A DNA stretch of 43,896 bases, taken from Trichosphaerium sp. ATCC 40318. Taxonomy: Eukaryota; Protista; Tubulinea. The stretch lies in assembly GCA_038496445.1 (NCBI GenBank), contig JALMLS010000095.1:1-43896 (forward strand), given 5' to 3'. Both the position numbers and the translations under genes were made by a program. Within the stretch, counting starts at the first letter, position 1; each line of letters starts with the position of its first letter. This document shows, piece by piece, positions 10,795-43,896 of this stretch. Below the pieces are notes generated by a model. That model was not told the origin of the DNA. It saw nothing but the letters and a program-made list of their open reading frames with translations, and searched no databases.

Positions 10795-10811
10795 AAAAGA
10801 GTAAAAAAAAA

Positions 10812-10952
10812 ATGGAATGACAAATAGTATTAGCAGCAAAAGTATTAGCAGCAGGAGTATGTACTGTCGGTGTAGGAGGAGCAAGTATAGGTATAGTTTT
10901 TTATTTGTTTTCTTATAAATATAGTTTTAATTTAATGGAAAAAGTATATTAG
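10812..10952 (+). pseudogene. atp9-like N-terminal fragment, 46 aa, no frameshift needed
   Basis: MEWQIVLAAKVLAAGVCTVGVGGASIGIVF resembles Atp9 helix 1 (AAK.IGAG.ATIG..GAG.GIG). No RNP loop or conserved Glu helix follows. Confidence 0.55.
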
Positions 10953-11141
10953 AGTGAATAGGTTCTTTTGGTATTTATAATGTTGGGTTCAAAATATAAA
11001 TAAAAGAGAAATATTGTGGAAAGTGTGATATTTATAAATATTTGATTTTGTAGGTTTAGGGTTTTTTTTTTTACATTAATTATTAGTTATAATTTATTTT
11101 TAATTTTAATTTTTATAATATTTTTTATATGAATATTAACG

Positions 11142-11192
11142 ATTTTTTTTTTGCTTTTTTATAACAATGTTATAAAAAAGCAAAAAAAAAAT
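11142..11192. repeat. Palindrome, 25-bp arms, upstream of ORF352
   Basis: a(t10)gc(t6)ataaca-a-tgttat(a6)gc(a10)t. Confidence 0.9.
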
Positions 11193-11210
11193 GTTATTAT
11201 GTTATGAGGA

Positions 11211-12269
11211 ATGGATCCTATGGCGTTAGCTGTGGGAGGTATTGGGTATGTAGACATAGGTTTTGGTTTTGCAGCCACTTGTATTATAGGAGTAATAGTA
11301 GGCGTGATGGTGGTAGTAAATAGAAGATCAGCATCAGAAGAAGGAGAAAAAAATATAGAAGGAGAAAAGAAAGAAGAAGAAAAAATAGAAGGAGAAAAAA
11401 TAGAAGGAGAAGAAAAAATAGAAGAAGAAAAAATAGAAGGAGTAGAAAAAATAGAAGGAGAAAAAATAGAAGAAGAAAAAATAGAAGGAGTAGAAAAAAT
11501 AGAAGGAGAAAAAATAGAAGGAGAAAATATAGAAGGATTAGAAAAAATAGAAGGAGAAAAAATAGAAGGAGAAAATATAGAAGGATTAGAAAAAATAGAA
11601 GGAGAAAATATAGAAGGAGAAAATATAGAAGGATTAGAAAAAATAGAAGGAGAAAATATAGAAGGAGAAAATATAGAAGGATTAGAAAAAATTTTTGATT
11701 GAATAAAAGAGTGAGAATTGTATAACAGTGAAAATTTAAAAATTTATTTAGAAAACAGTGTTTCAGCATTATCTAAAAAAAATGTAGTGTGTTATATAGA
11801 CGTCTGTATAAATAGTCTGAAATTGAAATTAGAAGAATTATTTGCTTATTTTAATACTAAAGAAAACATAAAAACCTTAGATTTAGAAAATTTAAGAGCA
11901 ATAAAAAAAAATTTATATGATTTGATAGAAGTTTTTGACTGGCAAGCTACAGATGTAGGAAAACTGTCCAAGTATTTTAAGGATCAAATGCATAGATTTG
12001 TGGAGAATAATGCATCGCTATTAGAGGCCCGACGTGATTTATGGGCAAAGCTTTTAGAAAAATATGGATTACTGCAAGATATATTATGAGGGATTGTTAA
12101 GTCTAGATCAATAATAAAAGAGGCAATAAAAAAAAAATTATCAATATTAGATAAAGAAATAGAAAACAGATGAAGCGAATGATTTTATGAAAAAGGCGTT
12201 GATTTTTATTATTTTATAACCAACATGCTGGGAAATATATATGAATTTTTTTCTTATTTTTTTACTTAA
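11211..12269 (+). CDS. ORF352 (UGA=Trp): N-terminal TM helix, acidic EKIEG repeats, helical C-terminal part; unedited ORFan
   Basis: The 163-aa and 123-aa track ORFs are in one frame separated only by TGA, and the frame runs to TAA at 12267-12269. It is open upstream to ~11004, with an in-frame ATG at 11199. Confidence 0.72.
11347..11693 (+). repeat. Coding tandem repeat, 15/18-nt units (gaaaaaatagaagga; E[K/N]IEG, with L/V variants)
   Basis: Directly visible. Confidence 0.95.
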
Positions 12270-12302
12270 ACTACTTATAGTTTAAGTAAAAAAATAAGAA
12301 AA
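12249..12302 (+). terminator. Hairpin (25-bp arms, 4-nt loop) overlapping the ORF352 stop; possible processing/termination signal
   Basis: ttttcttatttttttacttaaacta-ctta-tagtttaagtaaaaaaataagaaaa. Function is inferred. Confidence 0.5.
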
Positions 12303-12479
12303 GTGTGTAAATTTTGAAAAAAAAGAATGTTATTTGTATTATAAATGAATATTTAAAAAAGATAGTTATTTGTTTATAATTTTTTATAGTTTCAAGGGAA
12401 GAAGCGAAATTAAAAATAAATTAAGTTCTTTATTTTATTTTTTTTGTTTTTTAGTAATTTTAAATATATTAATAAAATA

Positions 12480-13443
12480 ATGTTAGTTATTTTAAAGTTT
12501 ATTATTTTATTATTTTAATGTTTCCGTTTATTTTTGCGGAGCATTATTAACTTTATGGAAAGAAAAGTTATGGCTGGTATCAAAGAAGGAAAGGACCTAT
12601 GTAGTAGGTTTATATGGTTTATTACAGCCATAGCTGATGGGTTGAAATGATTTGAAAAGAAACAATAATTCCTCAATACGCTATGGTATTTTATTTGTTT
12701 TTGCTCCTTGTGGTTGTTATTTTTATCTTAGTTCTTTTATCCTTATTACCTTTGTCTTTTAAAATGTAATCATAGATATAGATATAGTTTGATGTTGATA
12801 TTTGTTATATCGTCATTAGGTGTTTATGTTTAATTTTTGCGGGTTGGGCAAGTAACTCAAAATATGCTTTTTTAGTGCAATAAGAGCTGCTGCCCAAATG
12901 ATTTCTTATGAGTTCCTTTTGGTTTAGTTATTATTATATTGGTGCTTGAGCAGGTACGTTAAATCTTATAAGTGTAGTTAATTTACAAAAGATACTATTT
13001 TATTTTTATATGCGCCTGAGCGGCAATAATTTTTATAGTGACAATATTAGCAGAGACTAATAGGCCACCTTTCGCAGATTTACCAGAGGCAGAAGGTGAA
13101 TTAGTGTCTGTTATAATGTTGAATATTCTTCATGGGTTTTGTTTGTTTTTTTCTTTCTGATATATAAACATGATTATATTAAGTATTTTGTTTGCCAATT
13201 TATTTCTTGGCGAAATATTTTTTTTTATAATGATTTGTGGAAGGAATTCCTATTTTTTGTATATTAAAAGTTTATTAATAATGCTTATGTTTATTTGGTT
13301 AGAGCTTCATTACCTAGATATAGATATGATCATTTAATGAGTTTAGGTGAAAAACTTTGTTACCTATAACGGTAGGGTTTTATTGTTTAATAGTGAATAG
13401 CTTTGGGAGGTAAGTAATTTTATATGGTAGTTTTTTAGGTTAA
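12480..13443 (+). CDS. nad1: NADH dehydrogenase subunit 1 cryptogene
   Basis: With single-base insertions: [84 protein letters not shown]. Confidence 0.95.
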
Positions 13444-13445
13444 TT

Positions 13446-13988
13446 ATGCGTTGAATTAGAGAGTTTTTGCTTTTGAATTTATTTTAGGTCTTTTATTAAA
13501 TCTTTTGGACATATTTAAGAACTTTTATAGGATCTTGTAAAGATATGGCGATTTGTGGTTTTTATTTTTTTGGTTAAAATTAAGTGAGCGCATGCTGAAA
13601 ATCATTGTTAGATATTTTTGTGTAGATAATAGTGCAGCTGCTGTAAATTGAAGGTAGCTTACGTTTTTTCAAGTTTATTTAAAATCGTAGAATAAGATTA
13701 GAAGGTTTTGCATATAAAAAAAGAGGTAGTTTATTTACATCGTGTAAAATTTTTAGATCAGGTTTGTGGTTAGAAAGAGAGCGCAAGATTTATTTGGCGT
13801 ATACTTTTCGGGAATGTAGATATGCGTAGAATTTTATTAGACTATACTTTTAGAGGTTTCCTTTAAGAAAGGATTTTCCATTAACAGGTTATTATGAGTG
13901 AGATATGATGATCAAGGAAAGGTATAGTTTATGAACGGTAGAGCTAACACAGGATTATCGCATGTTTGATTTTGATATGAATGAGTAG
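13446..13988 (+). CDS. nad9: NADH dehydrogenase subunit 9 cryptogene
   Basis: WLERE.[57 protein letters not shown] after single insertions. Confidence 0.93.
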
Positions 13989-14286
13989 AAAAAATGTGAA
14001 GATAAAAAATTAAAGAAAATGGTAATTTTAGATTATTGTTGTGTATTTTTACATCATCGGGGTTATAATAACTTCCAAAGTATATTAGAAATGTTAATAA
14101 GTTTAGAGTTATTAGAGTTTTAATCTACGTTCTTGCTTTGGTTTTGCAGTCGTAACGGATATTTCTGTAGGTGTATATTAGGTATCATCATAATTATAGG
14201 AGCAGCAGCCCAATCGCGATTGGACTGGCGATATTGTGACAATATCGCGAACTTTAAAAAGTGTTTCAGTAGATATGTATCTTTAA
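13981..14286 (+). CDS. rpl11: Probable ribosomal protein L11 cryptogene (very divergent)
   Basis: C-terminal IVTISRTLKSVSVDM resembles L11 I.GTARSMGI.V. Position at the head of the r-protein cluster fits. Confidence 0.45.
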
Positions 14287-14296
14287 TAAAAGTTAA

Positions 14297-14730
14297 ATGT
14301 TTATTTTTAAAGAATTTAGTTTAAGATTAAAAATAAAGTAAATAATCTATTTGTTAAAAGTACTGGTGTTATTTAGTCTTTTTATTATCGTTATTTTATG
14401 TAGATAGTGCAATATTGATAAAGATGATATTTTTGAAAAATTATTAGAAATTTAAAATTTAAGCCGAGTTTATTCAAGTCAGAATTTAGTTTGGATAATT
14501 TTATAGAAGTAATATTAATATTTTAGAAGGATTAATAAAAATACGTTGCAAATAAAAATATAGAATGTTTAAAGAATTTGTTTAAATGTAATTTTTATTA
14601 GCGGGATTATTGAATGGCAAAGATTACGCAATTTAAGTTAGTAAAATCTACGTCGTAGATTTTACTAACTTAAATTGCGTAATCTTTGCCATTCAATAAT
14701 TTAATAAATTATTCAGGTGTAATATAGGAG
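14297..14730 (+). CDS. Unidentified cryptogene, possibly rpl10
   Basis: Follows putative rpl11. FLLAGLLNGK resembles the L10 LLGG..EG motif, but weakly. Confidence 0.3.
14606..14700. repeat. Perfect palindrome, 47-bp arms
   Basis: attattgaatggc...atctacg-t-cgtagat...gccattcaataat. Confidence 0.95.
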
Positions 14731-14917
14731 GTAGGAAATAAAAATAAAAATTATATAAAATATCAGGAAAATAAGGCATCTTTATGTTGTTGATATTTAA
14801 TTTTATTTATTTTTTATTTTTTTTTATTTTTTTTATTATATTATATTATATTTTTATACTATATAGTTTTATAATTTTAACTTCAGTGAATTTAAGAACG
14901 TAAAAATTTAAAATAAC

Positions 14918-15360
14918 ATGCGATGGTTAGATTTAGTGAAAAGGATCAACAAATAGTTTATTTAGTTATAGAACGCGTATGTAACTTCTTTAATAAAAAA
15001 AGAAAAAAAATTCGTGCGGTGATTTGTATTTTAAAATATATATGTGATTAAAGGAGCAAAATAGTGGAGTCCTTCTACTATTTTGCAGTTGCTTTTAGGC
15101 GTTCACACCGTTCTTTTGCCTAAAACAGTTGTTTTAGGCAAAAGAACGGTGCAGTACCCATGTATGTTAATGAGCGGAAAAGAGAACAATGGTAGTGTTC
15201 TGGTTACCAGAAATGTAAAGCCTAGGTTCAGTTATAGCAATTAGCAGGTGAATTATTAAAGGCATCCATAGGGCAGGGATTTGTAATTTGGAAAAAAAAA
15301 AATGCTTATTGAGGGGTTACCTATAGGCACCAAAGTTTTCGTTTATTTATAGGGGGGTAA
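14918..15360 (+). CDS. rps7: Ribosomal protein S7 cryptogene
   Basis: PKTVVLGKRTVAVPMYVNERKRETMVVFWL...LAGELLKASIGQG resembles S7 RRVGGATYQVP...AIRWL...LA.EL.DA...G. Confidence 0.68.
15106..15151. repeat. Palindrome, 22-bp arms, inside rps7
   Basis: caccgttcttttgcctaaaaca-gt-tgttttaggcaaaagaacggtg. Confidence 0.95.
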
Positions 15361-15410
15361 GAGTAAATATAAGGATAGACGTAATTTAAAAATAAATATA
15401 AATATTAAAA

Positions 15411-15583
15411 ATGATAAAAGTAAAGCGCTGGTGAATCAATTATTTGTAGATTGAATATTTTTTGGTTCTTTAAAGAAGATACAAATTATTTAAGTGGTTG
15501 GTGTATTTTAGAGAATCCTATAAAATGTGTATTTTAGAAATGGATATATGTTTCAAGGATTTCATATATAAATAAATTAATAA
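15411..15583 (+). CDS. rps19: Probable short, divergent S19 cryptogene
   Basis: LFVD...IQI.S...IL....RNG..F resembles S19 PFVD..IKIWSR.STIL...YNGK.F; synteny fits. Confidence 0.4.
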
Positions 15584-15584
15584 G

Positions 15585-15834
15585 ATGAGGTTTAGAGAGA
15601 GAGGTGCCGTGTTGTTTGCGAATTACGCGTTATTTTTAGAAGGTTAACTAAGCAGCTGCATATTTATGTGACAACCTTATGTAGCAGTGCGTGAAGAGAA
15701 GGAACTTTAACAAATTTTAGGTTATAGTAAGATGATGGGTTTATTGATAACAGAGATGCTAGAGCAAGTGATAAATTTGGAGAACAGTTAGAAGGTTACA
15801 AATGCGTTATAAATTACCTGTTGAGTGTTTTTAA
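15585..15834 (+). CDS. rpl16: Probable L16 cryptogene
   Basis: RITRYF..LHIYV.PY.AV...KG...GLLITE...YKLPV resembles the L16 C-terminal KLP motif; synteny fits. Confidence 0.5.
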
Positions 15835-16008
15835 GTGCAGCTTGAAGAGTTTAAATATGTACGGGAATCAAGGGGTGTTAGGGTTCCGTCGGTAGTGTTG
15901 TTAGTTCAGATGGGTTAGTTCAGTGGTGGATTGTTGTTTAGCAGGGACACAAAAACATTTAAAAGTCAGTATTATTTTAACAGTTGGATGTTGATTATGT
16001 ATATATAG
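15820..16008 (+). CDS. Possible L14 cryptogene
   Basis: Weak similarity plus position after rpl16. Confidence 0.3.
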
Positions 16009-16049
16009 AAAAGCAAAAAAAATAATATATAGGGGTGTAAATTTAAAAA

Positions 16050-16500
16050 TTTAGGAATTTTAAATTTACAAGTTGATTTAATTTAGGATTAAAAAATTTA
16101 AAGAAAAAATTTAAATTTACGTACATTAGAGGGTTACGATGATGTGTAATGTAATGTATCATTATGTGGATTATCAAAACATTATTTGGTTTCTGAAGTT
16201 ATTGATTTTTTTTTATAGCTTATATTATGTAGAATTTTTAAATTTGTTAAATAAAGAACGTGCGACGTGTGTGGTAAAATAGAAGATGTGGGTTAAGAGC
16301 TAGAGTAAATGATGTTGGAAAGTTTATTACGTGAACGCAAGATGTTCGAAACACCGTATTTTGGTGTTTCGAACATCTTGCGTTCACGTAATAAAGAGGA
16401 GATAGTAAAAAGATCCAGCGTTAGTTTTACTTGATCTTTGGCTTTAAATTTAAAGCCAAAGATCAAGTAAAACTAACGCTGGATCTTTAGAAATTAAATT
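16050..16500 (+). CDS. Possible L5 cryptogene
   Basis: Mostly synteny (between putative rpl14 and rps14); weak motifs. Confidence 0.25.
16323..16395. repeat. Palindrome, 33-bp arms, 7-nt loop
   Basis: tttattacgtgaacgc...aacacc-gtatttt-ggtgtt...gcgttcacgtaataaa. Confidence 0.95.
16409..16488. repeat. Perfect 80-bp palindrome with no spacer
   Basis: aaagatccagcg...gctttaaa|tttaaagc...cgctggatcttt. Confidence 0.95.
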
Positions 16501-16528
16501 TAAATGTAAATTAGTGAACATTTAAATA

Positions 16529-16751
16529 ATGGCGTACTTATAAATTTTGTGGGATGCTGCACAAACTTTTACTTCTAGAAAAAGTCGACAAAGAAATGCA
16601 AAAAGAATAAATTTAAAAGATTAAGGCGAGTTATATAAAACGTTATATTAAGTTTGACGTAAACATATTTTTAGTCGTGAGAGAAAAAGTTAAATTTAAA
16701 TAGATTTTATTTACGTCAAAAAGTTTTTTTTGATCTTTTAATTTAGTTTAG
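16529..16751 (+). CDS. rps14: Probable S14 cryptogene
   Basis: ASYIKRY..LT.KHIFSR...LNRFYLRQ resembles S14 RIKNRC..TGR.R....LSR..FR. Confidence 0.4.
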
Positions 16752-17167
16752 TGAATATATTTTGTAATTTTATAGTTTTTTATGAGTTATTATTATACTT
16801 ATAAAGGTTTATTTTAGTTGATAAATGAATAAAAATTCATTAAGTTATTTTTTAAAGAGAAATAAAACAGAAGAATATATTAAACATTATCTTAATTTGT
16901 TTAAAGCGCGAGATTATCTACTTTAAAAATAGCAATTTAAAAGATATAAGTAAATAAGATTGTTAGGGGAATCCTGTTGAAAAGGGCATGTAGTAAAAGG
17001 AATCTCTTTTGATAGGTTGCTTTATCAAAACACACTAAAAAGAAATGTATTATTTAAAGCAATATAATTATATTGATCTAAATATTGGGATTGAAAGGTG
17101 TAAAAGGTCAATATGCCAAAAAACATTAAAAGAAATAAAGGGGACCCAAACTGAAAAAAAAATCTAA
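16751..17167 (+). CDS. Cryptic r-protein region (rps8/rpl6 expected by synteny)
   Basis: Coding-like frameshifted sequence; identity not resolved. Confidence 0.2.
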
Positions 17168-17172
17168 TAAGA

Positions 17173-17507
17173 ATGTTAGGAATAATTATAAAAAATTAAA
17201 AAGAAGAGAAAAAAATTAAAGAATTTGGGGGGAAATTTTGGTTTGGTGTAAAGTCATTATCTCTTGGTGATATTATATGTTGTCAAAAATGAAATTTATT
17301 TATTTTGTTTATTAAATAGTAAATATATAAAAAAACTAAGCCCGTTAAAAGAATTCCAAAAACTAGAAGTGCTTTGAAAAAAAGAAGACGTAGAATTAGA
17401 CGATTAAGGTTTAGTAAAAAAATGATGAAAGGTGGCGTGCATGGTTTGAATATTGTGACAAAAAGGAAAGTCAAAGTTATTATTTGAGCATGCATCAGAT
17501 ATTGTAA
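17173..17507 (+). CDS. rps13: Probable S13 cryptogene
   Basis: NFGLGVK...RIRRL...WKGWR resembles S13 IYGIG...I.RL..I.SYRG.RH. Confidence 0.5.
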
Positions 17508-17536
17508 TAAAAAAAATAAAAGTCAAATTTTTATAT

Positions 17537-17592
17537 AACAAAAGATCGGCTTTTAAGATACCTATAGGTATCTTAAAAGCCGATCTTTTGTT
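17537..17592. repeat. Perfect 56-bp palindrome
   Basis: aacaaaagatcggcttttaagataccta|taggtatcttaaaagccgatcttttgtt. Confidence 0.95.
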
Positions 17593-17702
17593 TATTTTAG
17601 GGTATTAAAAGAAAGTTTAGTGTAAAAAATTTAAATATAAAAGTTTATCAAAAATAAATTGCCTTTGGTATATTCAAATTATTTTAGTAAAGGTAAGTGT
17701 AT

Positions 17703-17749
17703 TATCCACTAAACGCATGCGTGAAATAGGTCAATGCGTTTAGTGGATA
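17703..17749. repeat. Hairpin, 16-bp arms, 15-nt loop
   Basis: tatccactaaacgcat...atgcgtttagtggata. Confidence 0.9.
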
Positions 17750-18049
17750 GATTTTGAAAAAGAAGAGAAAAAAGAGTATATTATCTAATTTATTTTAAAT
17801 AAAAGATAGGAAATATTTTTCAAACAAATGTAGGTTTAATTTTTTAAAAAAGAGCCGTGAAGGTTAAATTTAGCGAGAAGTGATTATAAATATAAAGTTT
17901 AGATAAATTAAAACAATATATACATACATGTTTTATAATAAATTAATAGATTAATAAAAGGTGTAGGTTTAATATAAAAAAAAATAGAGGTAAAAAATCG
18001 CGTAATAATATAAATATGAATGCGTGATTTTTAAAAAATTATGGCGTTA

Positions 18050-19100
18050 TAAGTTTATGGACAAAATTAATGTATAAAAGAAGTTATGGTACTAGTTTAG
18101 TAATATTAACAAAAAATTAAATAAGATGGGTATTTAAAAAGAGTTCGAAAAAAAAAGAGTAATATAACTTAATAAGATTATATTACTCTTTTTTTTTCGA
18201 ACAGAAATCGCGTGAGCTTTTACATTTATTTTTGTTTAATACGCAGCTTTATAAAAGTAAAACAAAAAAAAGGGTAAAAAAAATAAAAGTAAAATTAATA
18301 AATTGTGAAAAAGATCAGATAAAAGAAAAAAAAGAAATAAACTTGCAAAAAATAACAATAAAAATAAAAAAATTAAAATCAAAAGCAAAAAAAAAAAGAA
18401 AAAAAAAAAAGAAAAAAATAATAATACTAATAGGAAATAAAAAACAAGCGTCTATTATTACCACTAAAAGCTGGCAAAATATAAAAATAAAAAATAAAGA
18501 AGTATATTTAACAACAAAAAAAAAAGTAAGAAATAAAAAACGTTGAAATAAGAGGATGCGTATTAGTGACGTCGTGAAAAAGGTATTAAAATTTGTATAG
18601 TTTTCAAAACGTTTTGAAAAAAATATAAATAAATTTATACAAAATGCAATAGATTTTTATATAATGTTTTAAATTATTTAAAATAAGTATATTTAATTTT
18701 GTATTTCTTGAATATTTTCTTTGCATGTGGTTTTATTTCTTTTTTTATTTAGAATTTCATCGATGAATAAAATTTGATGAAATTTGAAAATTGATGAAGA
18801 GAATTAGTAACAGAAACTAAAGCCTCACATGTCTTTTAAAAAAATTAACTTTAATGGGCGTAAAGTATTGTTAAATTTAAGGTTATATAATTATAGTATT
18901 ATTTTATAGATTATAAAAGTAAGATAAATTAATGAAAGGTTACTTATTTTTTGAAATTTACGTCGTAGGTTTGCGTGTCGTATGAAATATTTAGTGATTG
19001 GTTGTTAAGTTTATGAAGGTAGGATTTATTCATATTTAAGTTTTCAGAGAACTCTAAGAAAGTGGGAGTTTATTGAGAGATTATACTTATATAACGGAAA
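18050..19100 (+). CDS. Lys/Arg-rich cryptogene, possibly rps4
   Basis: KASHVF..INFNGRKV near 18820-18870 resembles the S4 motif ARQLI.H..V.VNG.KV; boundaries unknown. Confidence 0.3.
18143..18202. repeat. Hairpin, 25-bp arms, 10-nt loop
   Basis: gttcg(a9)gagtaatataa...ttatattactc(t9)cgaac. Confidence 0.9.
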
Positions 19101-19110
19101 TAGAGTCTTT

Positions 19111-19251
19111 TTGAGATTGCTTTTTTTAAATATAGATGCAGATCGTAGTTTTGTGCATCTATGGAAATATAAACAATCTCAAAGATTGTTTATATTTCCA
19201 TAGATGCACAAAACTACGATCTGCATCTATATTTAAAAAAAGCAATCTCAA
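19111..19251. repeat. 141-bp palindrome (69-bp arms, 3-nt loop) with nested inverted repeats, upstream of the tRNA cluster
   Basis: ttgagattgc...aaacaatct-caa-agattgttt...gcaatctcaa. Confidence 0.95.
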
Positions 19252-19290
19252 CTATAAAAAATCCTTGTTAGAAGGAAAAAAGAAAAAAAA

Positions 19291-19370
19291 GTCAGTGTGG
19301 TGGAATGTAGACACGTCGGATTTAGATCTCGTGTTTGAAAAAACGTGCGGTTCAAGTCCCGTCACTGAAA
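19291..19370 (+). tRNA. trnL: tRNA-Leu(TAG)
   Basis: gtcagtg..ggaat.gtagaca..tt-tag-a..long variable arm..ggttcaagtccc..cactgaa. Confidence 0.85.
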
Positions 19371-19372
19371 AA

Positions 19373-19444
19373 GGCTCGTTAGGATAACGGTTAATCCATA
19401 CTATTGCAAATAGTGTAATAACGGTTCAATTCCGTTACGAGCCA
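19373..19444 (+). tRNA. trnC: tRNA-Cys(GCA)
   Basis: Acceptor ggctcgt/acgagcc; anticodon arm acta-ttgcaaa-tagt. Confidence 0.9.
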
Positions 19445-19446
19445 AA

Positions 19447-19516
19447 GTCTGCGTCGTCTAAAGGTTAGGATACGTATTTTCAATTCGGCGATGTTGGTTC
19501 AAGTCCAACGTGGATA
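19447..19516 (+). tRNA. trnE: tRNA-Glu(TTC)
   Basis: Loop tt-ttc-aa; T arm gttggttcaagtccaac. Confidence 0.82.
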
Positions 19517-19527
19517 TTTTTTTTAAA

Positions 19528-19597
19528 GAACTATAGTTTAAAGGCAAAAACAGCAACTCATAAGTTGTAAGATGTGGGTTCGAGTCCACTGGGCTAA
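19528..19597 (+). tRNA. tRNA with CAT anticodon (elongator Met or lysidine-Ile)
   Basis: gcaa-ctcataa-gttgt; T arm gtgggttcgagtcc[c]ac. Confidence 0.8.
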
Positions 19598-19665
19598 ATG
19601 GGTATGCCGAGAGGTTAGGCGCTTGATTTTGAATAAGTTACGTTGGTTCGAATCAACTACCCAAC
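19598..19665 (+). tRNA. trnQ: tRNA-Gln(TTG)
   Basis: Acceptor tgggta/taccca; loop tt-ttg-aa; T arm gttggttcgaatc[c]aac. Confidence 0.8.
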
Positions 19666-19669
19666 AAAA

Positions 19670-19751
19670 GTACGTGTATCCAAGTGGTTAAAGGAGTAGA
19701 TTGTAAATTTATTGAGTTTTTCTCTTCGTGGTTCGAATCCCACCGCGTTAG
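19670..19751 (+). tRNA. trnY: tRNA-Tyr(GTA)
   Basis: gtaga-ttgtaaa-tttat; long variable arm. Confidence 0.88.
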
Positions 19752-19754
19752 GGA

Positions 19755-19826
19755 GGGGGCGTAGCTTAATAGGTAGAGCAGTGGGTTTTTAACCCAAAGG
19801 TTGCAGTTCGATGCCTGTCGCCCGAA
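19755..19826 (+). tRNA. trnK: tRNA-Lys(TTT)
   Basis: tggg-tttttaa-ccca. Confidence 0.88.
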
Positions 19827-19835
19827 GTTAAAAAG

Positions 19836-19907
19836 GTATCAGTAGTTTAATTGGTAAAATAGAGGTTTCCAAAATCTTTGATGTCGGTTCAAGTCCGGCC
19901 TGAAAAA
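19836..19907 (+). tRNA. trnW: tRNA-Trp(CCA)
   Basis: gaggt-ttccaaa-atctt; T arm gtcggttcaagtccggc. Confidence 0.85.
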
Positions 19908-19987
19908 GTCAGTGTGGTGGAATGTAGACACGTCAGATTCAAAATTTGTGTTTGAAAAAACGTGCGGTTCAAGTCCCGTCACTGAAA
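19908..19987 (+). tRNA. trnL: tRNA-Leu(CAA)
   Basis: Near-identical to 19291-19370 except the anticodon arm (tt-caa-aa). Confidence 0.85.
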
Positions 19988-19989
19988 AA

Positions 19990-20062
19990 TCGGGAGTGGA
20001 GTATAGGTTAGCTCGCAGGCTCATGACCCTTGAGGAGATCGGTTCGAGTCCGGCCTCCAAAA
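19990..20062 (+). tRNA. trnM: tRNA-Met(CAT), probably initiator
   Basis: tggagta..ggttagctc D arm; agg-ctcatga-ccct. Confidence 0.82.
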
Positions 20063-20068
20063 AAAAAA

Positions 20069-20138
20069 CAGGGTATAACTTAAAAGGTAGAGTGTTGGCT
20101 TTGGAGCCAAAAGTGCAGGTTCGAGTCTGCTATCCAAA
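20069..20138 (+). tRNA. trnP: tRNA-Pro(TGG)
   Basis: ttggc-tttgga-gccaa (6-nt loop, one base missing); T arm gcaggttcgagtc[c]tgc. Confidence 0.85.
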
Positions 20139-20141
20139 AAA

Positions 20142-20212
20142 GGGCCAATAGTTTAAAAGGTAAAATAGAAGTTGTCGGCCTTTCAGATATCGGTTCAAGT
20201 CCGATTTGCTCG
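20142..20212 (+). tRNA. trnD: tRNA-Asp(GTC)
   Basis: Loop tt-gtc-gg; acceptor gggccaa/ttg[g]ctc. Confidence 0.83.
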
Positions 20213-20244
20213 TTATTAAAGGTAGTTGGTGTAAAAACAAGTAA

Positions 20245-21945
20245 AAGTTAGCGTATGATTTTGCGCTGAGTGAGTGCTAATGTGGACTTAACACATGCAA
20301 GGTAATATTCTATATTATTTAGAATGCCCGTAAGGTGAGTATTAATCGATATTAGCTAGCTATGTTAAGCAAAATAAGCTTAATAAAGTAAATAGATTTA
20401 TAATTTTTATATAAAGAGATACGAGTTTTTGACACATAGGAATGTATCGTAAATGATAAGTAGTAGGTTTAAGGTAAAGCTTACCTAGCCGAAGACCGTA
20501 CCAGGACTGAGAGGGTAAACTGGCACAGCGGGGAGAGATGACCCGAACGTTAAGGCGCAGCAGTGAGGGATTTTGGACAAGTTTAATGCACGATCCAGTT
20601 ATGCCGTGTGGCTAAATTTAGCACAGTTGTAGAAAGATTGTTCGCTTAAGAAGGCAGAGTCGAAAGTCAGTGAAATAATGATAATAGTGATAGTAATTAT
20701 TGGAAAGGCTGTCTAACTTCGTGCCAGCAGTCGCGGTAACACGGGGGCCCAAGTGCTACTCATCTTGATTGGTGTAAAGGGAAGTAAACTGTCCATAAAG
20801 TTTTGAGTAAAAAACTCGGGTTGATCTGAGGATAACTCATTTAACTTATGTCTTTGTATTTTTTTGAGTACGTGGTATTATAAATTAGGAGTAGAATTCT
20901 AAGATTTATAAGACCATCATGCGGAGCAATCGCGTACTGTGAAAGAATAGACGTTAGTAATCGAAAGCGTAGGGAGTGAAAAGATTAGATACCCTTGTAA
21001 TCTACGCTGTGACCGATGGATATTTGGCGCTGGACATCTAGGAGGTTTTAAATCCTTTGTGACTTGTACCGGTGGTGAAGCTTACGCGTAAATATCTCAC
21101 CTGGGGAAATATGTCGCAAGATGTAAACCTAAGAAATTGGCGGAGTGTATTACCAGCAGTGGATCATGTTGATTATCTGATGATCCGCGTTTAATCTTAC
21201 AAACCTAGATATATGCCCCAAGATAAAGTTATATTTATAAGTAGTAGGTTTTTTTCAAATTTATATTAAAAATTGAGAGAATACTTTAGGTCCAGGTGTT
21301 GCATGGCGCCGTCAGCTCGTGTAGTGATATGTCGCCTTACTGGATAAACGGGCGTACCCATGAAATTGAGTGAAAATAATAATACAATTTAGCAAATCAT
21401 GCAATATGATAGTTAGTAGTGATGACGACTGGTCGTCATGGCCTTAATGGTTTGGCTTCAAATGTGATACAACGTTGGTACAACAAGATGCTATTCATAA
21501 GTGATTAGCGCTAGTCTGATAAAACAATCTCTTGTTCGGATATTCCCTGAAATAGGAATATGAAGATGAATTGCTAGTAATCGCGGATCATCACACCGCG
21601 TGAATACTTGCCTGCGCTCGTACATACCGCCGTGGCCCAGCGAAAGCTGGGTGGCTGGACGTAGTTTAAATTAATCAAAAAAAAAATCAAAAAAGTTTGT
21701 ATTTTAAAGTAGAGTTTTCTTAGGAAAAGCAACTTTTTATGAAAAATAAACTAAATAGGGCAAGAAATAAAAAGATAATTTAAATTTAAATTATCTTTTT
21801 AACGTAAGCTAAAAGCGGTTGAGTAAATCTCCTGCTTTAAAAGATAATTAAAAAGTAGAAAAGATAAAAAAAAGGACTATAAAACCTATGTCAGCGATTG
21901 CTGTAACTCGTAACAGGGTAGTGTATCGGAAGGTGTAACTGATAA
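20245..21945 (+). rRNA. rns: Mitochondrial small-subunit rRNA (missing single bases at conserved sites)
   Basis: taacacatgcaag, gtgccagcagtcgcggtaa, gattagataccc, gtcagctcgtgt, gctagtaatcgc, tcgtaacagggta. Confidence 0.96.
21768..21801. repeat. 34-bp perfect palindrome within the rns 3' expansion
   Basis: taaaaagataatttaaa|tttaaattatcttttta. Confidence 0.9.
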
Positions 21946-22019
21946 AATTAAAAAAATTTAAAGGGTTATTTTAAATTTTATTTTAATAAAAAAATAAAAG
22001 AAGTAAAGAAAAGAGAAAG

Positions 22020-22718
22020 ATGTCAGTTTTGGAGCATTTTGATCCCGTAGTAAATAATTTAGGTTGTTTGTGTTTTCAAGTTGGTTTTTATTTTGGTAAG
22101 TTGTTTTTTTTTTTATGGATTTTTTTACGGTTTATTTTTTTTAAATTAAGTGTTTTAGGGATGGTTCTTTTAGTTTTTTTGAATTTATAGTTAATTTTGT
22201 TGGGGAGTAACTGGGAAATTAACGGTTGTTTTTTAAATAATAAAAATAAAAGAATATTAAACCTTTCATTTTTGTTGTTTTCGCGAGATTTTGTTTTTAA
22301 ATATAATAGCAATGATACCCGGAGATTATCAATTACAAGTTTTTGGGCAGTTGCATTTTTTTTTGCAGCGTAATTTGAATATATGCAGGTTTATTAAGGT
22401 TTATTTTAAACGAACTGGTTTATTACTTTATTTGTACCGGAAATAAAAGCGTAATTCTTTTTATTTTAATAATATAGAGTTTGTATCTTATATTTTAAGG
22501 TAGTTAGTCTACATGTGCGTTTAATGGCTAATATATTAGCTGGCACGCATTATTAAATGTTTATGCGCAGTGTTTTATGCGAGTATAGCTTATATTTACA
22601 AACAATTTTAATCGTAGTGACGTTTTAATTATGATTTTAGAATTTATAGTTGCGGCAATACAGCTTATATTTTCTTAATGTTAATGTGCTTTATTTAAGC
22701 GATTTTTTATCTAATTAA
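22020..22718 (+). CDS. atp6: ATP synthase subunit 6 cryptogene
   Basis: IEFVSY...VRLMANILAGHALL and LEFIVAAIQAYIF after single insertions. Confidence 0.93.
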
Positions 22719-22754
22719 ATTATTTAAATTTATAATAAAAAAGTGAAAAAGTTG

Positions 22755-22988
22755 ATGGATAAAAGGTTATTTGCGGAAGAATTTAAAATATTTACATTAT
22801 ATTTAAAATTATTAATAAGTGTTGATATTAACGCATATATAGAAATATCGCTTTTATGTCGACATATTATTTATTTTTTTTATGATTTATTTATTTGATA
22901 TATAAATTTAGAAATAAAACTAGATATTGTTAATAACTATTATAAAGGGGTTTACGACATTATAATTTGCAATATAGTGATAAAATAA
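22755..22988 (+). CDS. ORF77 (UGA=Trp), uninterrupted, unknown function
   Basis: MDKRLFAEEFKIFTLYLK...IVIK*, 78 codons without a frameshift, abutting cox3. Confidence 0.35.
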
Positions 22989-23774
22989 AAAATCGTCAAA
23001 GCATCGTTGGCATTATGTAGATGCTAGCCATGGCCTTTTTTTTTAAGTTATGGACGTTACTTTTATTTTTAGGGCTATTACGTGGATGCATTGTCAAAAT
23101 TGTGCCCTGGTTTATTTTTATTTGGTACAATGTGTCATTATTATCAGTTTATGGTTGGTGGCGTGATTTAGATAGAGAGTGATTTTAGGTCATAGAACAG
23201 TGTAATAGCAAGAAACTTACAATATGTTTTATTTTTTTTTTAGTTGCGGAATGATGTTTTTTGTACCTTTTTTTGCGCTTTTTTTTATTATGTTTGTGTT
23301 ATGTAGCTAGAATAGGAGGTAATGACCAGGTTGTGGTATAAGTAGCCCAGCGCCTTTTGTATACCTTTGATAAATACTTTATTATTATTATATTCAGTTT
23401 AATTTGTCAGGTAGCTACTATGGCTGTAGCCGCCGTGAATATTATCATGTTATTTGGGTTATGTGGTAACATTGGTTTTTGGATTATTATTTTTATTTAA
23501 TCAGTGATAGAATATTTTACATTACCTTTTAGTATAACCAGCGGGTTTTTGGAAGTACATCTTTATGTTAACAGGTTTACATGGTTGTCATGTAATAGCC
23601 GGTGAATTTTTTTGTGCGTATGTTTGGTCGATATCTACATATGGTTATAGTGCACGTATTTACAGGGATTTGCTTTTGCTAATTGTATTGACATTTTGTA
23701 GATGTTATTTGATAGTTTTATTTATAGGTGTTTATATGTGAACAGACTTTTTGAATGGAATAAAAGTGATTTAG
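22977..23774 (+). CDS. cox3: Cytochrome c oxidase subunit 3 cryptogene
   Basis: HRWHYVDASPWP, GSTFFMLTGLHGCHV, YWHFVDVIW (W=TGA); start approximate. Confidence 0.94.
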
Positions 23775-23842
23775 TTTTTAATATGCTTTATATTTATCAA
23801 TAGTGTTAAGTTACAGTGATAAAAAAAAAAAGAAAAAATATA

Positions 23843-24236
23843 ATGATTCAATAGATATTTTATTTTTTCAACAGAAATTATTTTATTATTTTTTACTTTA
23901 TTTATAGTATATTTTTTGTGTTTTTTTTTATATTAAAGGTATCTCAGAAATAACAAAATTGAGGTATGAATTAATGTTAAATATGTACAAGTAAATAAAT
24001 TGTATGTCTAGTTAAACAAAATGTCATTTAGTATAATTTTATTATTAGAAGAGGAATATTAAATTTATCATGTGTTTTTTTGTAACTCTTTTTTGTATTT
24101 AATTTTATGCTTATTAGAATTTTTTAGTTTAGAAGTTATTTTAGCTGACGTACTATTTTATTTTTTGTTTTATTATTATATTTGAACTGAGCAATATTGT
24201 TGGAGGGTTTGGTTCTTTATAGTTTTAAAGCGTTAA
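23843..24236 (+). CDS. atp8: Probable ATP synthase subunit 8 cryptogene
   Basis: MIQ[I]D start, hydrophobic stretch, then ISEITKLR; resembles MPQLD...I..ILKLR. Confidence 0.55.
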
Positions 24237-24240
24237 TAAA

Positions 24241-26208
24241 ATGGAAAGGCTTAATATTATTACGGTTAAAAAAATTAAAAAAATATAAAATAAATGGACG
24301 ATCATGTAATTTCTTATCATTTTAATGGTTTAGGTAAGTAAGCTACGTTGCAGATGAGTAGTTTATGCTATAGAATCATGAAAGTGAGTGCTGGTGAGCG
24401 AGTAGTTTTTGCAGATGGAGGACTTTAGGAGTAGTTATGAACTTAGAAGCTAAGAGAATAGTATCTTAGTTTTCGGACGAGATATAGTATTCAAATAGGT
24501 GATTTTTTATTTTGAACTGGTAAAGTTTTAAATGTGAACGTTGCGCGTATAAAAGTGGTTTTATAGGTGATGGTTTAGTCAATCTTTAGTTGTTAAAAAA
24601 TATATAAATTGTAGTGGGTTGTAGTTTTTGATTCTATAGAGAGTTATTCTGAGTATGATGGACTAATTGATGATTTGGCGAAAAATTTTTAGAGTTTTAA
24701 GGAATGGGAATATATTACATGGGATTCTTATCTTTATAGGAGAAGAATAAGCATATAGTAAATACTGTAATATTATTCAAAGTACAAATGGTTTATTGCT
24801 GGTAATTTAGTTTTACCTTTATAATGCAAACTCAACAAACAAAAGAAATTTGCCTTTATTTTGTTTGTTGGAAATCTATTAGGTCAGTTTGGTAGTAAAG
24901 AAATTGTACATCAATAAAAATAGATTTTTACAATACATAAGGATCCAAAATTTTACAGATTACAAACAATGTGAAACATCATAATTATTATTATCAGCAA
25001 GTTAATTTAAATATGTTGAGAAAAAAGCTCCAGGATTATAAGAAGAACATCAATAGCTCAAGCTTTGGAAACTGTGTTAAAGCAATAGATTCTATGTACC
25101 AATAGGAAAAGTCAAAGGGAATTAGTTTTGGGAGATAGACAGACAGAAAAACAGCAATTTGTTTAGATACATAATACATCAAAGTAGAGAATTTAGAAGA
25201 AAAAGCCAAGATTTGGTGCAGTAAATGTATTTTTAATGCTATTTATGTAGCTATAGGTCAAAAAATGTCAACGTTAAAAGAATAGCATGTTATTAAAAAT
25301 GAAAAATTGTTGAAGAATGTAACTTTAATATGTTCAACTGCAAGTTCAGCAATGGTTATCAATATTTAGCTCCTTATGTAGTACATCTATAGGAGAATAT
25401 TGAAGAGAATTGGGTATGGATGCTTTAATTATATATGATGATTTAAGTAAGCATGCTAATATTTATAGCAAATATCTCTTTTATTGGGTCGTCCTCCAGG
25501 ACGAGAAGCTTATCCTGGGATGTTTTTTATTTGCATTCTCGTTTATTAGAAAGATCCGCAAAATTAGTGAATCTTGGGCTGTATGGCGTTGTGGTTTAAC
25601 GCGCTATGAAAATGAGAACATGTGTAGAGAGATTAGGAGAACTTTAACAGCGTTACCTATAGCAGAAACTATAGAAGAGATGTATCAGCTTATATACCAA
25701 CAAACTTAATTTCTATTACGATGGACAAATTGTTTTAGATACAAACTTGTTTAAAAAAGGGTAAGACCTGCTGTTAATTTAGGTTATCTGTAAGTAGGGT
25801 AGGTCAATGGCTCAAAGTAAAATGATGAATATTTAGCAAAAGATTTAAAATTAGAATTGGCTCAATTTCGTGAGTTGAAGATTTTGCTAAATTTGATCGT
25901 CTTTAGATGAGGCTACCTTAAATTTAATAATAGAGGTCAAAGATTAATACAAATGATGTTCAAAAAAATAAAATGCCGATGCAACAGATCATCAGTTGTT
26001 ATCTTTGTTTGCAGCATCTGAAGTTTTTTAGATAATATTGCTGTAAATAAGTAGCTACTTTTGAAAATATTATGCATAAAGTAAGTATAGAAACAGTATA
26101 TTTGGTAGAAATTGGTTTAAGATAATATAAGAAAACGTCAGTAAAGTTAAATGTAAAAAAATTAAATGCTTTTTTGAAGAGTTTGCAGATTGTTTTGTTT
26201 TAATTTAA
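24241..26208 (+). CDS. atp1: ATP synthase F1 alpha cryptogene with a large insertion
   Basis: EKKAPGII, ELVLGDRQTGKT (Walker A), [47 protein letters not shown]. Confidence 0.96.
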
Positions 26209-27451: not shown

Positions 27452-28188
27452 CATATTAAGTCTGTTCACATATAAACACCTGTCAATACAATTAGCTCCC
27501 TGTAAATACGTGCACTATAACCATATGTAGATATCGACCAAACATACGCACAAAAAAATTCACCGGCTATTACATGACAACCATGTAAACCTGTTAACAT
27601 AAAGATGTACTTCCAAAAACCCGCTGGTTATACTAAAAGGTAATGTAAAATATTCTATCACTGATTAAATAAAAATAATAATCCAAAAACCAATGTTACC
27701 ACATAACCCAAATAACATGATAATATTCACGGCGGCTACAGCCATAGTAGCTACCTGACAAATTAAACTGAATATAATAATAATAAAGTATTTATCAAAG
27801 GTATACAAAAGGCGCTGGGCTACTTATACCACAACCTGGTCATTACCTCCTATTCTAGCTACATAACACAAACATAATAAAAAAAAGCGCAAAAAAAGGT
27901 ACAAAAAACATCATTCCGCAACTAAAAAAAAAATAAAACATATTGTAAGTTTCTTGCTATTACACTGTTCTATGACCTAAAATCACTCTCTATCTAAATC
28001 ACGCCACCAACCATAAACTGATAATAATGACACATTGTACCAAATAAAAATAAACCAGGGCACAATTTTGACAATGCATCCACGTAATAGCCCTAAAAAT
28101 AAAAGTAACGTCCATAACTTAAAAAAAAAGGCCATGGCTAGCATCTACATAATGCCAACGATGCTTTGACGATTTTTTATTTTATCAC
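27452..28188 (-). CDS. cox3: cox3 cryptogene (copy 3; 3' end corrupted by deletions at the junction)
   Basis: Mirror of 22977-23774. Confidence 0.85.
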
Positions 28189-28446
28189 TATATTGCAAAT
28201 TATAATGTCGTAAACCCCTTTATAATAGTTATTAACAATATCTAGTTTTATTTCTAAATTTATATATCAAATAAATAAATCATAAAAAAAATAAATAATA
28301 TGTCGACATAAAAGCGATATTTCTATATATGCGTTAATATCAACACTTATTAATAATTTTAAATATAATGTAAATATTTTAAATTCTTCCGCAAATAACC
28401 TTTTATCCATCAACTTTTTCACTTTTTTATTATAAATTTAAATAAT

Positions 28447-29145
28447 TTAATTAGATAAAAAATCGCTTAAATAAAGCACATTAACATTAAGAAAATATAA
28501 GCTGTATTGCCGCAACTATAAATTCTAAAATCATAATTAAAACGTCACTACGATTAAAATTGTTTGTAAATATAAGCTATACTCGCATAAAACACTGCGC
28601 ATAAACATTTAATAATGCGTGCCAGCTAATATATTAGCCATTAAACGCACATGTAGACTAACTACCTTAAAATATAAGATACAAACTCTATATTATTAAA
28701 ATAAAAAGAATTACGCTTTTATTTCCGGTACAAATAAAGTAATAAACCAGTTCGTTTAAAATAAACCTTAATAAACCTGCATATATTCAAATTACGCTGC
28801 AAAAAAAAATGCAACTGCCCAAAAACTTGTAATTGATAATCTCCGGGTATCATTGCTATTATATTTAAAAACAAAATCTCGCGAAAACAACAAAAATGAA
28901 AGGTTTAATATTCTTTTATTTTTATTATTTAAAAAACAACCGTTAATTTCCCAGTTACTCCCCAACAAAATTAACTATAAATTCAAAAAAACTAAAAGAA
29001 CCATCCCTAAAACACTTAATTTAAAAAAAATAAACCGTAAAAAAATCCATAAAAAAAAAAACAACTTACCAAAATAAAAACCAACTTGAAAACACAAACA
29101 ACCTAAATTATTTACTACGGGATCAAAATGCTCCAAAACTGACAT
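28447..29145 (-). CDS. atp6: atp6 cryptogene (copy 3)
   Basis: Mirror of 22020-22718. Confidence 0.9.
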
Positions 29146-29219
29146 CTTTCTCTTTTCTTTACTTCTTTTATTTTTTTATTAAAATAAAATTTAAAATAAC
29201 CCTTTAAATTTTTTTAATT

Positions 29220-30920: not shown

Positions 30921-30952
30921 TTACTTGTTTTTACACCAACTACCTTTAATAA

Positions 30953-31874
30953 CGAGCAAATCGGACTTGAACCGATATCTGAAAGGCCGACAACTTCTAT
31001 TTTACCTTTTAAACTATTGGCCCTTTTTTGGATAGCAGACTCGAACCTGCACTTTTGGCTCCAAAGCCAACACTCTACCTTTTAAGTTATACCCTGTTTT
31101 TTTTTTGGAGGCCGGACTCGAACCGATCTCCTCAAGGGTCATGAGCCTGCGAGCTAACCTATACTCCACTCCCGATTTTTCAGTGACGGGACTTGAACCG
31201 CACGTTTTTTCAAACACAAATTTTGAATCTGACGTGTCTACATTCCACCACACTGACTTTTTCAGGCCGGACTTGAACCGACATCAAAGATTTTGGAAAC
31301 CTCTATTTTACCAATTAAACTACTGATACCTTTTTAACTTCGGGCGACAGGCATCGAACTGCAACCTTTGGGTTAAAAACCCACTGCTCTACCTATTAAG
31401 CTACGCCCCCTCCCTAACGCGGTGGGATTCGAACCACGAAGAGAAAAACTCAATAAATTTACAATCTACTCCTTTAACCACTTGGATACACGTACTTTTG
31501 TTGGGTAGTTGATTCGAACCAACGTAACTTATTCAAAATCAAGCGCCTAACCTCTCGGCATACCCATTTAGCCCAGTGGACTCGAACCCACATCTTACAA
31601 CTTATGAGTTGCTGTTTTTGCCTTTAAACTATAGTTCTTTAAAAAAAATATCCACGTTGGACTTGAACCAACATCGCCGAATTGAAAATACGTATCCTAA
31701 CCTTTAGACGACGCAGACTTTGGCTCGTAACGGAATTGAACCGTTATTACACTATTTGCAATAGTATGGATTAACCGTTATCCTAACGAGCCTTTTTCAG
31801 TGACGGGACTTGAACCGCACGTTTTTTCAAACACGAGATCTAAATCCGACGTGTCTACATTCCACCACACTGAC
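30953..31874 (-). tRNA. Cluster of 12 tRNAs (L, C, E, CAT, Q, Y, K, W, L, fM, P, D), copy 3
   Basis: Mirror of 19291-20212. Confidence 0.9.
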
Positions 31875-35754: not shown

Positions 35755-35804
35755 TTTTAATATTTATATTTATTTTTAAATTACGTCTATCCTTATATTT
35801 ACTC

Positions 35805-36247
35805 TTACCCCCCTATAAATAAACGAAAACTTTGGTGCCTATAGGTAACCCCTCAATAAGCATTTTTTTTTTTCCAAATTACAAATCCCTGCCCTATGGA
35901 TGCCTTTAATAATTCACCTGCTAATTGCTATAACTGAACCTAGGCTTTACATTTCTGGTAACCAGAACACTACCATTGTTCTCTTTTCCGCTCATTAACA
36001 TACATGGGTACTGCACCGTTCTTTTGCCTAAAACAACTGTTTTAGGCAAAAGAACGGTGTGAACGCCTAAAAGCAACTGCAAAATAGTAGAAGGACTCCA
36101 CTATTTTGCTCCTTTAATCACATATATATTTTAAAATACAAATCACCGCACGAATTTTTTTTCTTTTTTTATTAAAGAAGTTACATACGCGTTCTATAAC
36201 TAAATAAACTATTTGTTGATCCTTTTCACTAAATCTAACCATCGCAT
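35805..36247 (-). CDS. rps7: rps7 cryptogene (copy 3)
   Basis: Mirror of 14918-15360. Confidence 0.65.
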
Positions 36248-37719: not shown

Positions 37720-37721
37720 AA

Positions 37722-40353: not shown

Positions 40354-40370
40354 TTTTTTTTTACTCTTTT

Positions 40371-43857: not shown

Positions 43858-43896
43858 TTATAAAACACCCCGCCATGTAATGTATTGAATTCAATA

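Follow-up and report, generated by a model that had tools for sequence, protein, structure and literature searches.

Mitochondrial RNA editing in which every added base is a copy of an adjacent one has so far been described in one organism, the heterolobosean amoeba BB2, and a search of the accessible literature found no later report of doubling-type editing beyond that paper. The 475 insertions of BB2, each of one nucleotide, are G in 84% of cases and without exception repeat a neighbouring base; they are found in 43 of 44 protein genes, both ribosomal RNAs (rRNAs) and 12 of 25 transfer RNAs (tRNAs) (Yang, Harding, Kamikawa, Simpson, Roger 2017, Genome Biol Evol 9:1161; PMC5421314). In these tRNAs the added bases rebuild acceptor and anticodon stems, the GUUC motif and an anticodon loop of 6 nucleotides (nt), and polymerase stutter was proposed by the authors as the mechanism (PMC5421314). 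The subject of the present analysis is a cluster of 12 tRNA genes, with the small subunit (SSU) rRNA gene next to it, on contig JALMLS010000095.1 of Trichosphaerium sp. ATCC 40318; this 43.9-kb mitochondrial contig (~74% AT) was analysed whole and is called the window below. Its tRNA, rRNA and messenger RNA (mRNA) genes are very probably cryptogenes whose transcripts are repaired by RNA editing that doubles a neighbouring base, probably through polymerase stutter. The editing is of the same kind as that of BB2, and is therefore not new in kind; it differs in its density, in the bases inserted and in the number of sites per tRNA.

The tRNA cluster as encoded in the DNA

Together, Rfam and ARAGORN place 12 mitochondrial tRNA genes within 19291-20214, all on the + strand and in the order Leu(UAG), Cys, Glu, Met, Gln, Tyr, Lys, Trp, Leu(CAA), Met, Pro and Asp (Table 1; the two Met copies are referred to as Met1 and Met2). 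As encoded, four of them (Cys, Trp, one Met and Asp) pass the default threshold of ARAGORN, and five of the 12 lie under the Rfam gathering score for tRNA (29 bits). Base pairing within a tRNA fixes the identity and the near-position of an inserted base, free of codon ambiguity.

The initial annotation of this cluster, made from the letters of the sequence, had listed nine single missing bases, all of which are present where it placed them: the T arm is one base short in both Leu genes, Tyr, Lys, Met1, Gln and Pro, the acceptor strand of Asp lacks one G and the anticodon loop of Pro has 6 nt (positions in Table 1). The list is nevertheless too short, as a beam search assigns three doublings each to Met1 and Gln and probably two to Tyr, Asp, Glu, Pro and the Leu genes. 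The observation that the same bases are missing from both Leu genes also stands, but the two genes are 95% identical, differing in the anticodon arm only, so the shared defect represents one event and not two independent ones.

Predicted doublings and tRNA structure

Exact insertion sites inside the tRNAs were derived from structure and not from RNA. When every possible doubling was scored in each gene, the top single doubling was the site of the initial annotation in both Leu genes, Tyr, Lys, Pro and Asp, with gains of 7-11 units each. A freer scan, in which any base could be inserted anywhere, returned a doubling of a neighbour as the best single insertion in eight of the ten defective tRNAs (doublings make up ~23% of the distinct possible insertion variants, which gives the expectation for this test) and recovered all seven T-arm sites exactly. 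For the intact genes, Cys and Trp, no insertion adds as much as 5 score units, and the Cys gene is not improved by any of them.

Detection before and after insertion bears the initial annotation out: with its nine doublings, detection by ARAGORN at the default threshold rises from four to eight genes, and with a set of 20 doublings it reaches 12. In 1000 random sets of nine or 18 doublings, detection never exceeded six or seven genes, respectively. According to these models, ten of the 12 tRNAs would need between one and three insertions, and Cys and Trp none. The 20 predicted doublings (11 G, 7 C, 1 A and 1 T) would restore the G53-T54-T55-C56 motif, the fifth pair of the T stem, anticodon loops of 7 nt, pairs of the anticodon and acceptor stems and the two-base spacer at positions 8/9. 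Some of the predicted sites are unpaired, namely those in the anticodon loops of Pro and Met1, at positions 8/9 of Gln and in the D loop of Leu, where a second G at 19307 of Leu(UAG) would restore G18-G19. As encoded, the Pro gene is called by ARAGORN with an anticodon of 2 nt, and both of its deletions are visible in the Rfam alignment; a G doubled at 20103-04 gives UGG followed by G37. The Rfam alignment of Lys likewise has a deletion exactly at the place corresponding to 19806.

The predicted doublings leave acceptor pairs 1:72, 2:71 or 3:70 mismatched in most tRNAs, for example in Leu (G1.A72), Trp (G1.A72 and A3.A70) and Lys (G1.A72 and G2.G71); the situation is similar in Met1, Gln, Met2 and Pro.

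Table 1. Features of the window discussed in the text, with predicted (tRNA) or resolved (SSU rRNA) single-base insertions. Scores connected by "to" are those of the gene as encoded and after successive predicted doublings.
Feature	Position	Strand	Insertions and remarks	ARAGORN score	Rfam score (bits)
tRNA-Leu(UAG), cryptic	19291..19370	+	third G at run 19349-50 (T stem); second G at 19307 (D loop) probable	87.8 to 97.7 (G at 19349) to 102.2 (both)	25
tRNA-Cys(GCA), intact, internal control	19373..19444	+		122.5	61.2
tRNA-Glu(UUC), cryptic	19447..19516	+	C 19473 (anticodon stem); C 19509 (T stem/acceptor junction); both weaker calls	98.0 to 103.3 to 107.2	28.2
tRNA-Met(CAU) copy 1 (Met1), cryptic	19527..19596	+	C 19531 (acceptor); C 19557 or T 19558 (6-nt anticodon loop); C 19586-87 (T stem)	missed even at lowered threshold; 113.2 after three doublings	27.7
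tRNA-Gln(UUG), cryptic	19598..19665	+	G 19606 or T 19605 (positions 8/9); T 19634 (anticodon stem); C 19654 (T stem)	84.2 to 115.2 (three steps of ~10 units each)	27
tRNA-Tyr(GUA), cryptic	19672..19748	+	G 19730-31 (T stem); A 19672 (gives perfect 7-bp acceptor stem)	95.2 to 105.1 to 110.8	22.2
tRNA-Lys(UUU), cryptic	19757..19823	+	G 19806 (restores GGTTC motif of T arm)	96.7 to 107.9	
tRNA-Trp(CCA)	19836..19907	+	no insertion needed	110.9	48.9
tRNA-Leu(CAA), paralogue of Leu(UAG)	19908..19987	+	G 19966-67 (T stem); G 19924 (D loop)	91.0 to 100.9 to 105.4	
tRNA-Met(CAU) copy 2 (Met2)	19990..20062	+	G 20018-19 (anticodon stem); possibly A 20017 and C 20057-58	100.9 to 106.8 (one G); 116-120 (further doublings)	
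tRNA-Pro(UGG), cryptic	20069..20138	+	6-nt anticodon loop 20100-20105, one base short; C 20127 (T stem)	95.5 to 109.7 (as tRNA-Pro(tgg))	
tRNA-Asp(GUC)	20140..20214	+	G 20208 (acceptor 3' strand); G 20171 (anticodon stem)	104.3 to 111.7 to 116.5	
SSU rRNA, edited	20243..21945	+	directly downstream of tRNA cluster		
SSU insertions (X6 and X10 RNA contigs)	behind 21306, 21338, 21420, 21453, 21473, 21507, 21524, 21540, 21567, 21599, 21629, 21648	+			
Second, identical copy of tRNA cluster	30951..31874	-	other arm of the inverted repeat	equal to first copy	equal to first copy

RNA contigs are longer than the DNA

The contigs of four public runs (X1, X2, X6 and X10) were compared with positions 19260-25259 of the window. 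There are 186 insertion places in these 6 kb, and positions and bases are given for the best-supported 12 of them, all in the SSU rRNA. The RNA run X6 (with a depth peak on the rRNA and reads that end in Illumina adapters) provides the contigs over the tRNA cluster. One of them (record 25), covering 19446-19924, is 490 nt long where the window has 479 nt, a difference made up of 11 single-base gaps; it shows no substitutions and spans six tRNAs and the spacers between them, unprocessed and edited. Another (record 26; 20005-20259) contains five single-base insertions, also with no substitutions, and the contig across the Cys gene (record 24; 19349-19473) has no gaps. The sites proposed from structure number 11 inside the first of these intervals, plus one at its edge, and five inside the second, equal to the gap counts of X6; this match is agreement, not proof.

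A 3.5-kb contig of the same run (record 31) extends over cox3-atp1 and shows 95 gaps in the 3.2 kb of mRNA region, together with seven substitutions, including an adjacent pair at 23278-79, whereas the tRNA and SSU contigs of X6 have none. The mRNA, rRNA and tRNA regions are all edited by single-base insertion, at ~3% of positions in mRNA (~1 per 34 nt) and 2.3-2.6% in rRNA/tRNA. At the adjacent pair, the CT of the window (23278-23279) is replaced by GC in contigs of X1, X6 and X10, which could reflect an RNA substitution, a polymorphism or an error in the window.

The insertions are absent from the DNA-like material. Run X2, with uniform low depth, derives from a related strain that is ~4% diverged; over 21287-21659 (373 nt) it shows 16 substitutions and no gaps, and contains none of the 12 resolved SSU insertions, so that the rRNA editing sites are conserved between strains ~4% apart. 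Over the tRNA cluster (19448-19987) the same strain has 27 substitutions and 24 insertions or deletions (indels) relative to the window. In X1, a template-switch complementary DNA (cDNA) library, edited forms of rRNA and mRNA occur at high depth and an unedited form at a flat depth of ~500-1100, and an unedited contig of 590 nt (19343-19932) is identical to the window with no gaps. The initial annotation had named accurate DNA reads that bring back the bases as the result that would speak against it; X2 lacks all 12 SSU insertions and the unedited X1 contig equals the window.

Resolved insertions in the SSU rRNA

The SSU rRNA gene provides the resolved sites. In the RNA contigs 23 gaps are seen in 20250-21113 and 15 in 21181-21799, that is, at least 38 sites. 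All 12 resolved insertions, located in the 3' third of the gene and present in both X6 and X10 (the latter from Illumina RNA sequencing), are single bases identical to the next base, with no dinucleotide insertion among them, and nine of the 12 double an isolated base and not a homopolymer. In this small sample the bases are 7 G, 3 C, 1 A and 1 T. The insertions restore universal motifs of the SSU rRNA such as ACACCGCCCGT and GCGGTGAATAC. Around 9% of the isolated G's in the resolved stretch are edited, and no common flank could be seen among the 12 sites. The greater length of the RNA contigs and the 12 of 12 doublings in the SSU rRNA support the proposal of the initial annotation that repair happens at the level of the RNA, by copying an adjacent base, and not by ribosomal frameshifting.

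The match to Rfam ends at 21667; an AT-rich expansion (~21660-21880) follows, and beyond it the universal motif of the 3' end is found at ~21897-21944. The true 3' end of the SSU rRNA is placed at ~21945, in line with the RNA depth, which stays high past 21667, and with a read end joined to adapter at 21941. A search for 5S rRNA downstream of the Rfam end gave nothing, this stretch being the 3' part of the SSU rRNA; neither large subunit nor 5S rRNA is detectable within the window.

Proposed mechanism and alternative explanations

In the explanation favoured here, the cluster of 12 tRNAs is transcribed together with the downstream SSU rRNA, and single bases absent from the DNA appear in the RNA, each copying the adjacent base (G most commonly, then C, with few A and U). 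The edited contig across six unprocessed tRNAs suggests that this takes place before the tRNAs are excised. Editing would most likely be co-transcriptional, with a phage-type mitochondrial RNA polymerase reading one template base twice at programmed sites, by analogy with BB2. A template base read twice would explain the doubling rule with neither guide nor stem template, and re-reading by the polymerase would also account for the insertions predicted at unpaired positions (the anticodon loops of Pro and Met1, and positions 8/9 of Gln). Editing would repair the tRNA precursors and, presumably, the mature tRNAs as well.

Several points weigh against this explanation or against parts of it. The comparison of RNA and DNA was made on assembled contigs and not on reads; the library kinds of X1, X2 and X6 are automatic guesses, and no DNA run was identified as coming from the same isolate. 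The insertion places in the tRNAs are structural predictions, as the 12 resolved of 186 all fall in the SSU rRNA, and the weaker sites among them (Glu, the D loops of Leu and Tyr 19672) were kept when the contig counts were already known. A low-depth contig of X10 (depth 3.9; 19606-19803) has two insertions where four to five are predicted, which could be due to partial editing, to a mixed contig or to wrong predictions. As for the stutter itself, it is argued from the analogy with BB2 and from the doubling rule.

The simplest alternative is that the defects are errors of sequencing or assembly, in which short runs lost a base in error-prone long reads and the tRNAs are normal in the true DNA. 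Homopolymer error of long reads is suggested by the noisy ends of the window, where the raw assembly error resembles the claimed defect, with GG and CC runs shortened; it is ruled out by the comparison of RNA contigs that have the insertions with DNA-like contigs that do not. The 13.5-kb repeat arms of the window are, in addition, 100% identical, short-read contigs reproduce both the tRNA cluster (X1) and 373 nt of the SSU rRNA gene (X2) gap-free, and the extra bases appear in RNA runs at depths that track expression. With nine of the 12 resolved sites doubling an isolated base and ~3% of positions affected, far above the residual error of a polished consensus, an artefact is very improbable. 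Decay into tRNA pseudogenes, with translation relying on imported cytosolic tRNAs, would agree with the four of 12 genes that pass a standard tRNA finder and with the acceptor mismatches that persist after the predicted insertions. Random decay, however, would add substitutions and indels other than doublings, whereas each defect here is one missing base and one doubling gives a canonical cloverleaf; the cluster is moreover transcribed, the number of insertions in the RNA is the number that the structures need, and the cluster is kept in a repeat that is 100% identical. This explanation can be given hardly any weight. Faithful transcription of a second, rare version of the DNA that contains the bases, through heteroplasmy or expression copies, while the abundant form is silent, is only slightly easier to accept and still highly unlikely: minor variants are lost in contigs and the genome is palindromic and in several pieces, but no DNA-like contig of X2 has the insertions, the strict doubling rule would be left unexplained and, in the BB2 study, such polymorphism was excluded by mapping DNA reads.

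A real but post-transcriptional process, carried out by a machinery of cleavage, addition and ligation or by a stem-templated tRNA-repair enzyme, has more in its favour and is nonetheless judged unlikely. At most of the sites predicted in the tRNAs, which are in stems, the base could be dictated by the opposite strand, and template-dependent repair of tRNAs exists in the form of Acanthamoeba-type 5' editing. The unedited cluster sequence found in X1, a cDNA library (depth ~1100), could also be a precursor and not DNA; its depth is, however, flat over tRNAs, mRNA and spacers, as that of DNA would be. A stem template does not explain the unpaired tRNA sites or the insertions in mRNA and in rRNA loops, and stem-templated repair therefore cannot be the general mechanism. 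The doubling rule is left without explanation, and the edited contig covers six tRNAs with their spacers before any processing. In BB2, only 0.33% of reads are without the inserted base (PMC5421314).

Comparison with other editing systems

The likeness to BB2 extends over most of the features described. In both organisms insertions are of single bases, each a copy of a base encoded next to it and most often G; mRNA, rRNA and tRNA are all edited, and some tRNAs are undetectable from DNA alone; the mitochondrial DNA contains a large inverted repeat and the sites have no evident sequence motif. The differences are in extent and in organism. The SSU rRNA has at least 38 sites here against 18 in BB2, and the mRNA ~1 insertion per 34 nt against ~1 per 150 nt overall in BB2; editing is described as about six times denser here than in BB2. 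Predicted insertions affect ten of 12 tRNAs, several of them at two or three sites, whereas in BB2 12 of 25 are edited, at a single site in each. Bases other than G occupy five of the 12 resolved sites, so that in this small sample G is the commonest but less dominant than the 84% of BB2, and C is predicted at seven tRNA sites, whereas the tRNAs of BB2 are without C insertions. The organism is not BB2, a thermophile that is kept axenically at 42 C: the sequence of the window is contained in 21 public runs, including marine metagenomes, several marine samples and RNA libraries. Searches of metagenome and viral contigs and of protein collections found no relatives; in metagenome and viral contigs, neither an exact anchor taken from the unedited tRNA-Trp nor an edit-tolerant SSU anchor had any match. 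It may tentatively be proposed, as a possibility somewhat short of even, that the organism is not a close relative of BB2 and that duplicative, stutter-like editing has arisen at least twice, here at a Physarum-like density (~3% of positions in transcripts), with up to three edits per tRNA and on the unprocessed precursor.

Other systems share single features with this one. In kinetoplastids, editing inserts and deletes U only, in mRNAs only and with guide RNAs; here G, C, A and U are all added, and editing extends to tRNAs and rRNA. The stuttering at the paramyxovirus P and filovirus GP genes is similar in that the polymerase re-reads its template and the transcript gains copies of a templated base. 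Viral stutter sites are slippery homopolymer tracts that yield mixed products, whereas the sites described here are mostly isolated bases with an apparently uniform result, as judged from assembled contigs (in BB2 the efficiency is 99.7%). Acanthamoeba-type editing also mends, in the RNA, defective stems of encoded mitochondrial tRNAs. It replaces the first one to three 5' nucleotides with the 3' strand as template, after processing. Internal insertion is not part of it, and T arms and anticodon loops are beyond its reach. The mismatches that persist at acceptor positions 1-3 may nevertheless be its signature, that is, a second repair system; a precursor contig free of substitutions is what would be expected if 5' editing follows 5' processing.

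In calcaronean sponges only U is reportedly inserted, within existing short U tracts of mRNAs and rRNAs. The transcripts of the window differ in receiving G, C, A and U (T at one of the 12 resolved sites), mostly beside a single base, and in the editing of tRNAs. The two have in common an inserted base that equals its neighbours and a marine organism (Lavrov et al. 2016, Curr Biol 26:86; cited in PMC12710240). The myxomycete system (Physarum polycephalum and Didymium; MICOTREM) shows co-transcriptional, non-templated insertion in mRNA, rRNA and tRNA as well, with tRNA stems and the GUUC motif restored, and its density as quoted in PMC5192504 (~4% of mRNA and ~2% of rRNA/tRNA residues) is similar to the present values; its insertions, however, are mostly C and include dinucleotides, and the base need not match a neighbour, whereas here G is commonest and 12 of 12 are doublings. 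Editing in paradinids (Ascetosporea) is substitutional, and the paper on the Meteora mitochondrial genome mentions no RNA editing and has the BB2 study in its reference list only.

A second organism with doubling-of-neighbour editing would allow the features of the polymerase or its partners and the conservation of sites to be compared, and this second, denser system comes with public RNA and DNA data and an assembled nuclear genome. If an independent origin is true, a comparative search could be made for the factors that cause a phage-type RNA polymerase to copy selected template bases twice. The case also illustrates that annotation from DNA alone fails here for mitochondrial tRNA, rRNA and protein genes, as standard pipelines return four of 12 tRNAs and no intact protein genes.

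Genome context

The window carries a bacterial-type SSU rRNA in addition to the tRNA cluster, and its GC skew is strong and strand-specific. The map is palindromic and over-circularised, with two arms (10184-23668 and 27497-40981) that are 100% complementary and a unit of ~31.7 kb. The ends of the window (1-1450 and ~40980-43896) are noisy copies of interior sequence, with 96-97% identity and differences that are nearly all indels; the first 1450 nt show 96.7% identity when aligned with the clean copy, and the alignment has seven to eight mismatches but 44 gap openings. In this noisy copy additional GG and CC runs of the Leu and Cys genes are shortened, and tRNA-Cys (52-122) has 71 nt compared with 72 nt in the clean copies. 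Such indel-rich ends indicate an assembly made from long reads with its ends unpolished, and features read from them are unreliable.

Nearly every gene on the contig is a cryptogene, as deduced from the broken open reading frames (ORFs) and from pieces of nad1, cox3 and atp1 that are recognisable in shifting frames; no credible ORF longer than ~100 amino acids (aa) is found in the 44 kb. In protein searches, no candidate emerged for the antisense open frame over Gln-Tyr-Lys and nothing for a frameshift-free ORF of 123 aa (11718..12089), and an exact look-up of an ORF of 163 aa (11211..11702) in protein collections was without record. A cox3 fragment of 58 aa had no matches in an exhaustive HMMER search and is too broken to match the cox3 in PDB. 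The inverted-repeat border (23668) falls within the 3' end of cox3 (23565-23741 on the + strand; 27466-27600 on the - strand), so that the two copies would differ in their C-terminus.

Directly upstream of the tRNA cluster lies a perfect hairpin of ~140 nt (19112-19250), repeated in the other arm and the source of spurious microRNA-family matches in Rfam. This hairpin could be a signal for transcription or replication.

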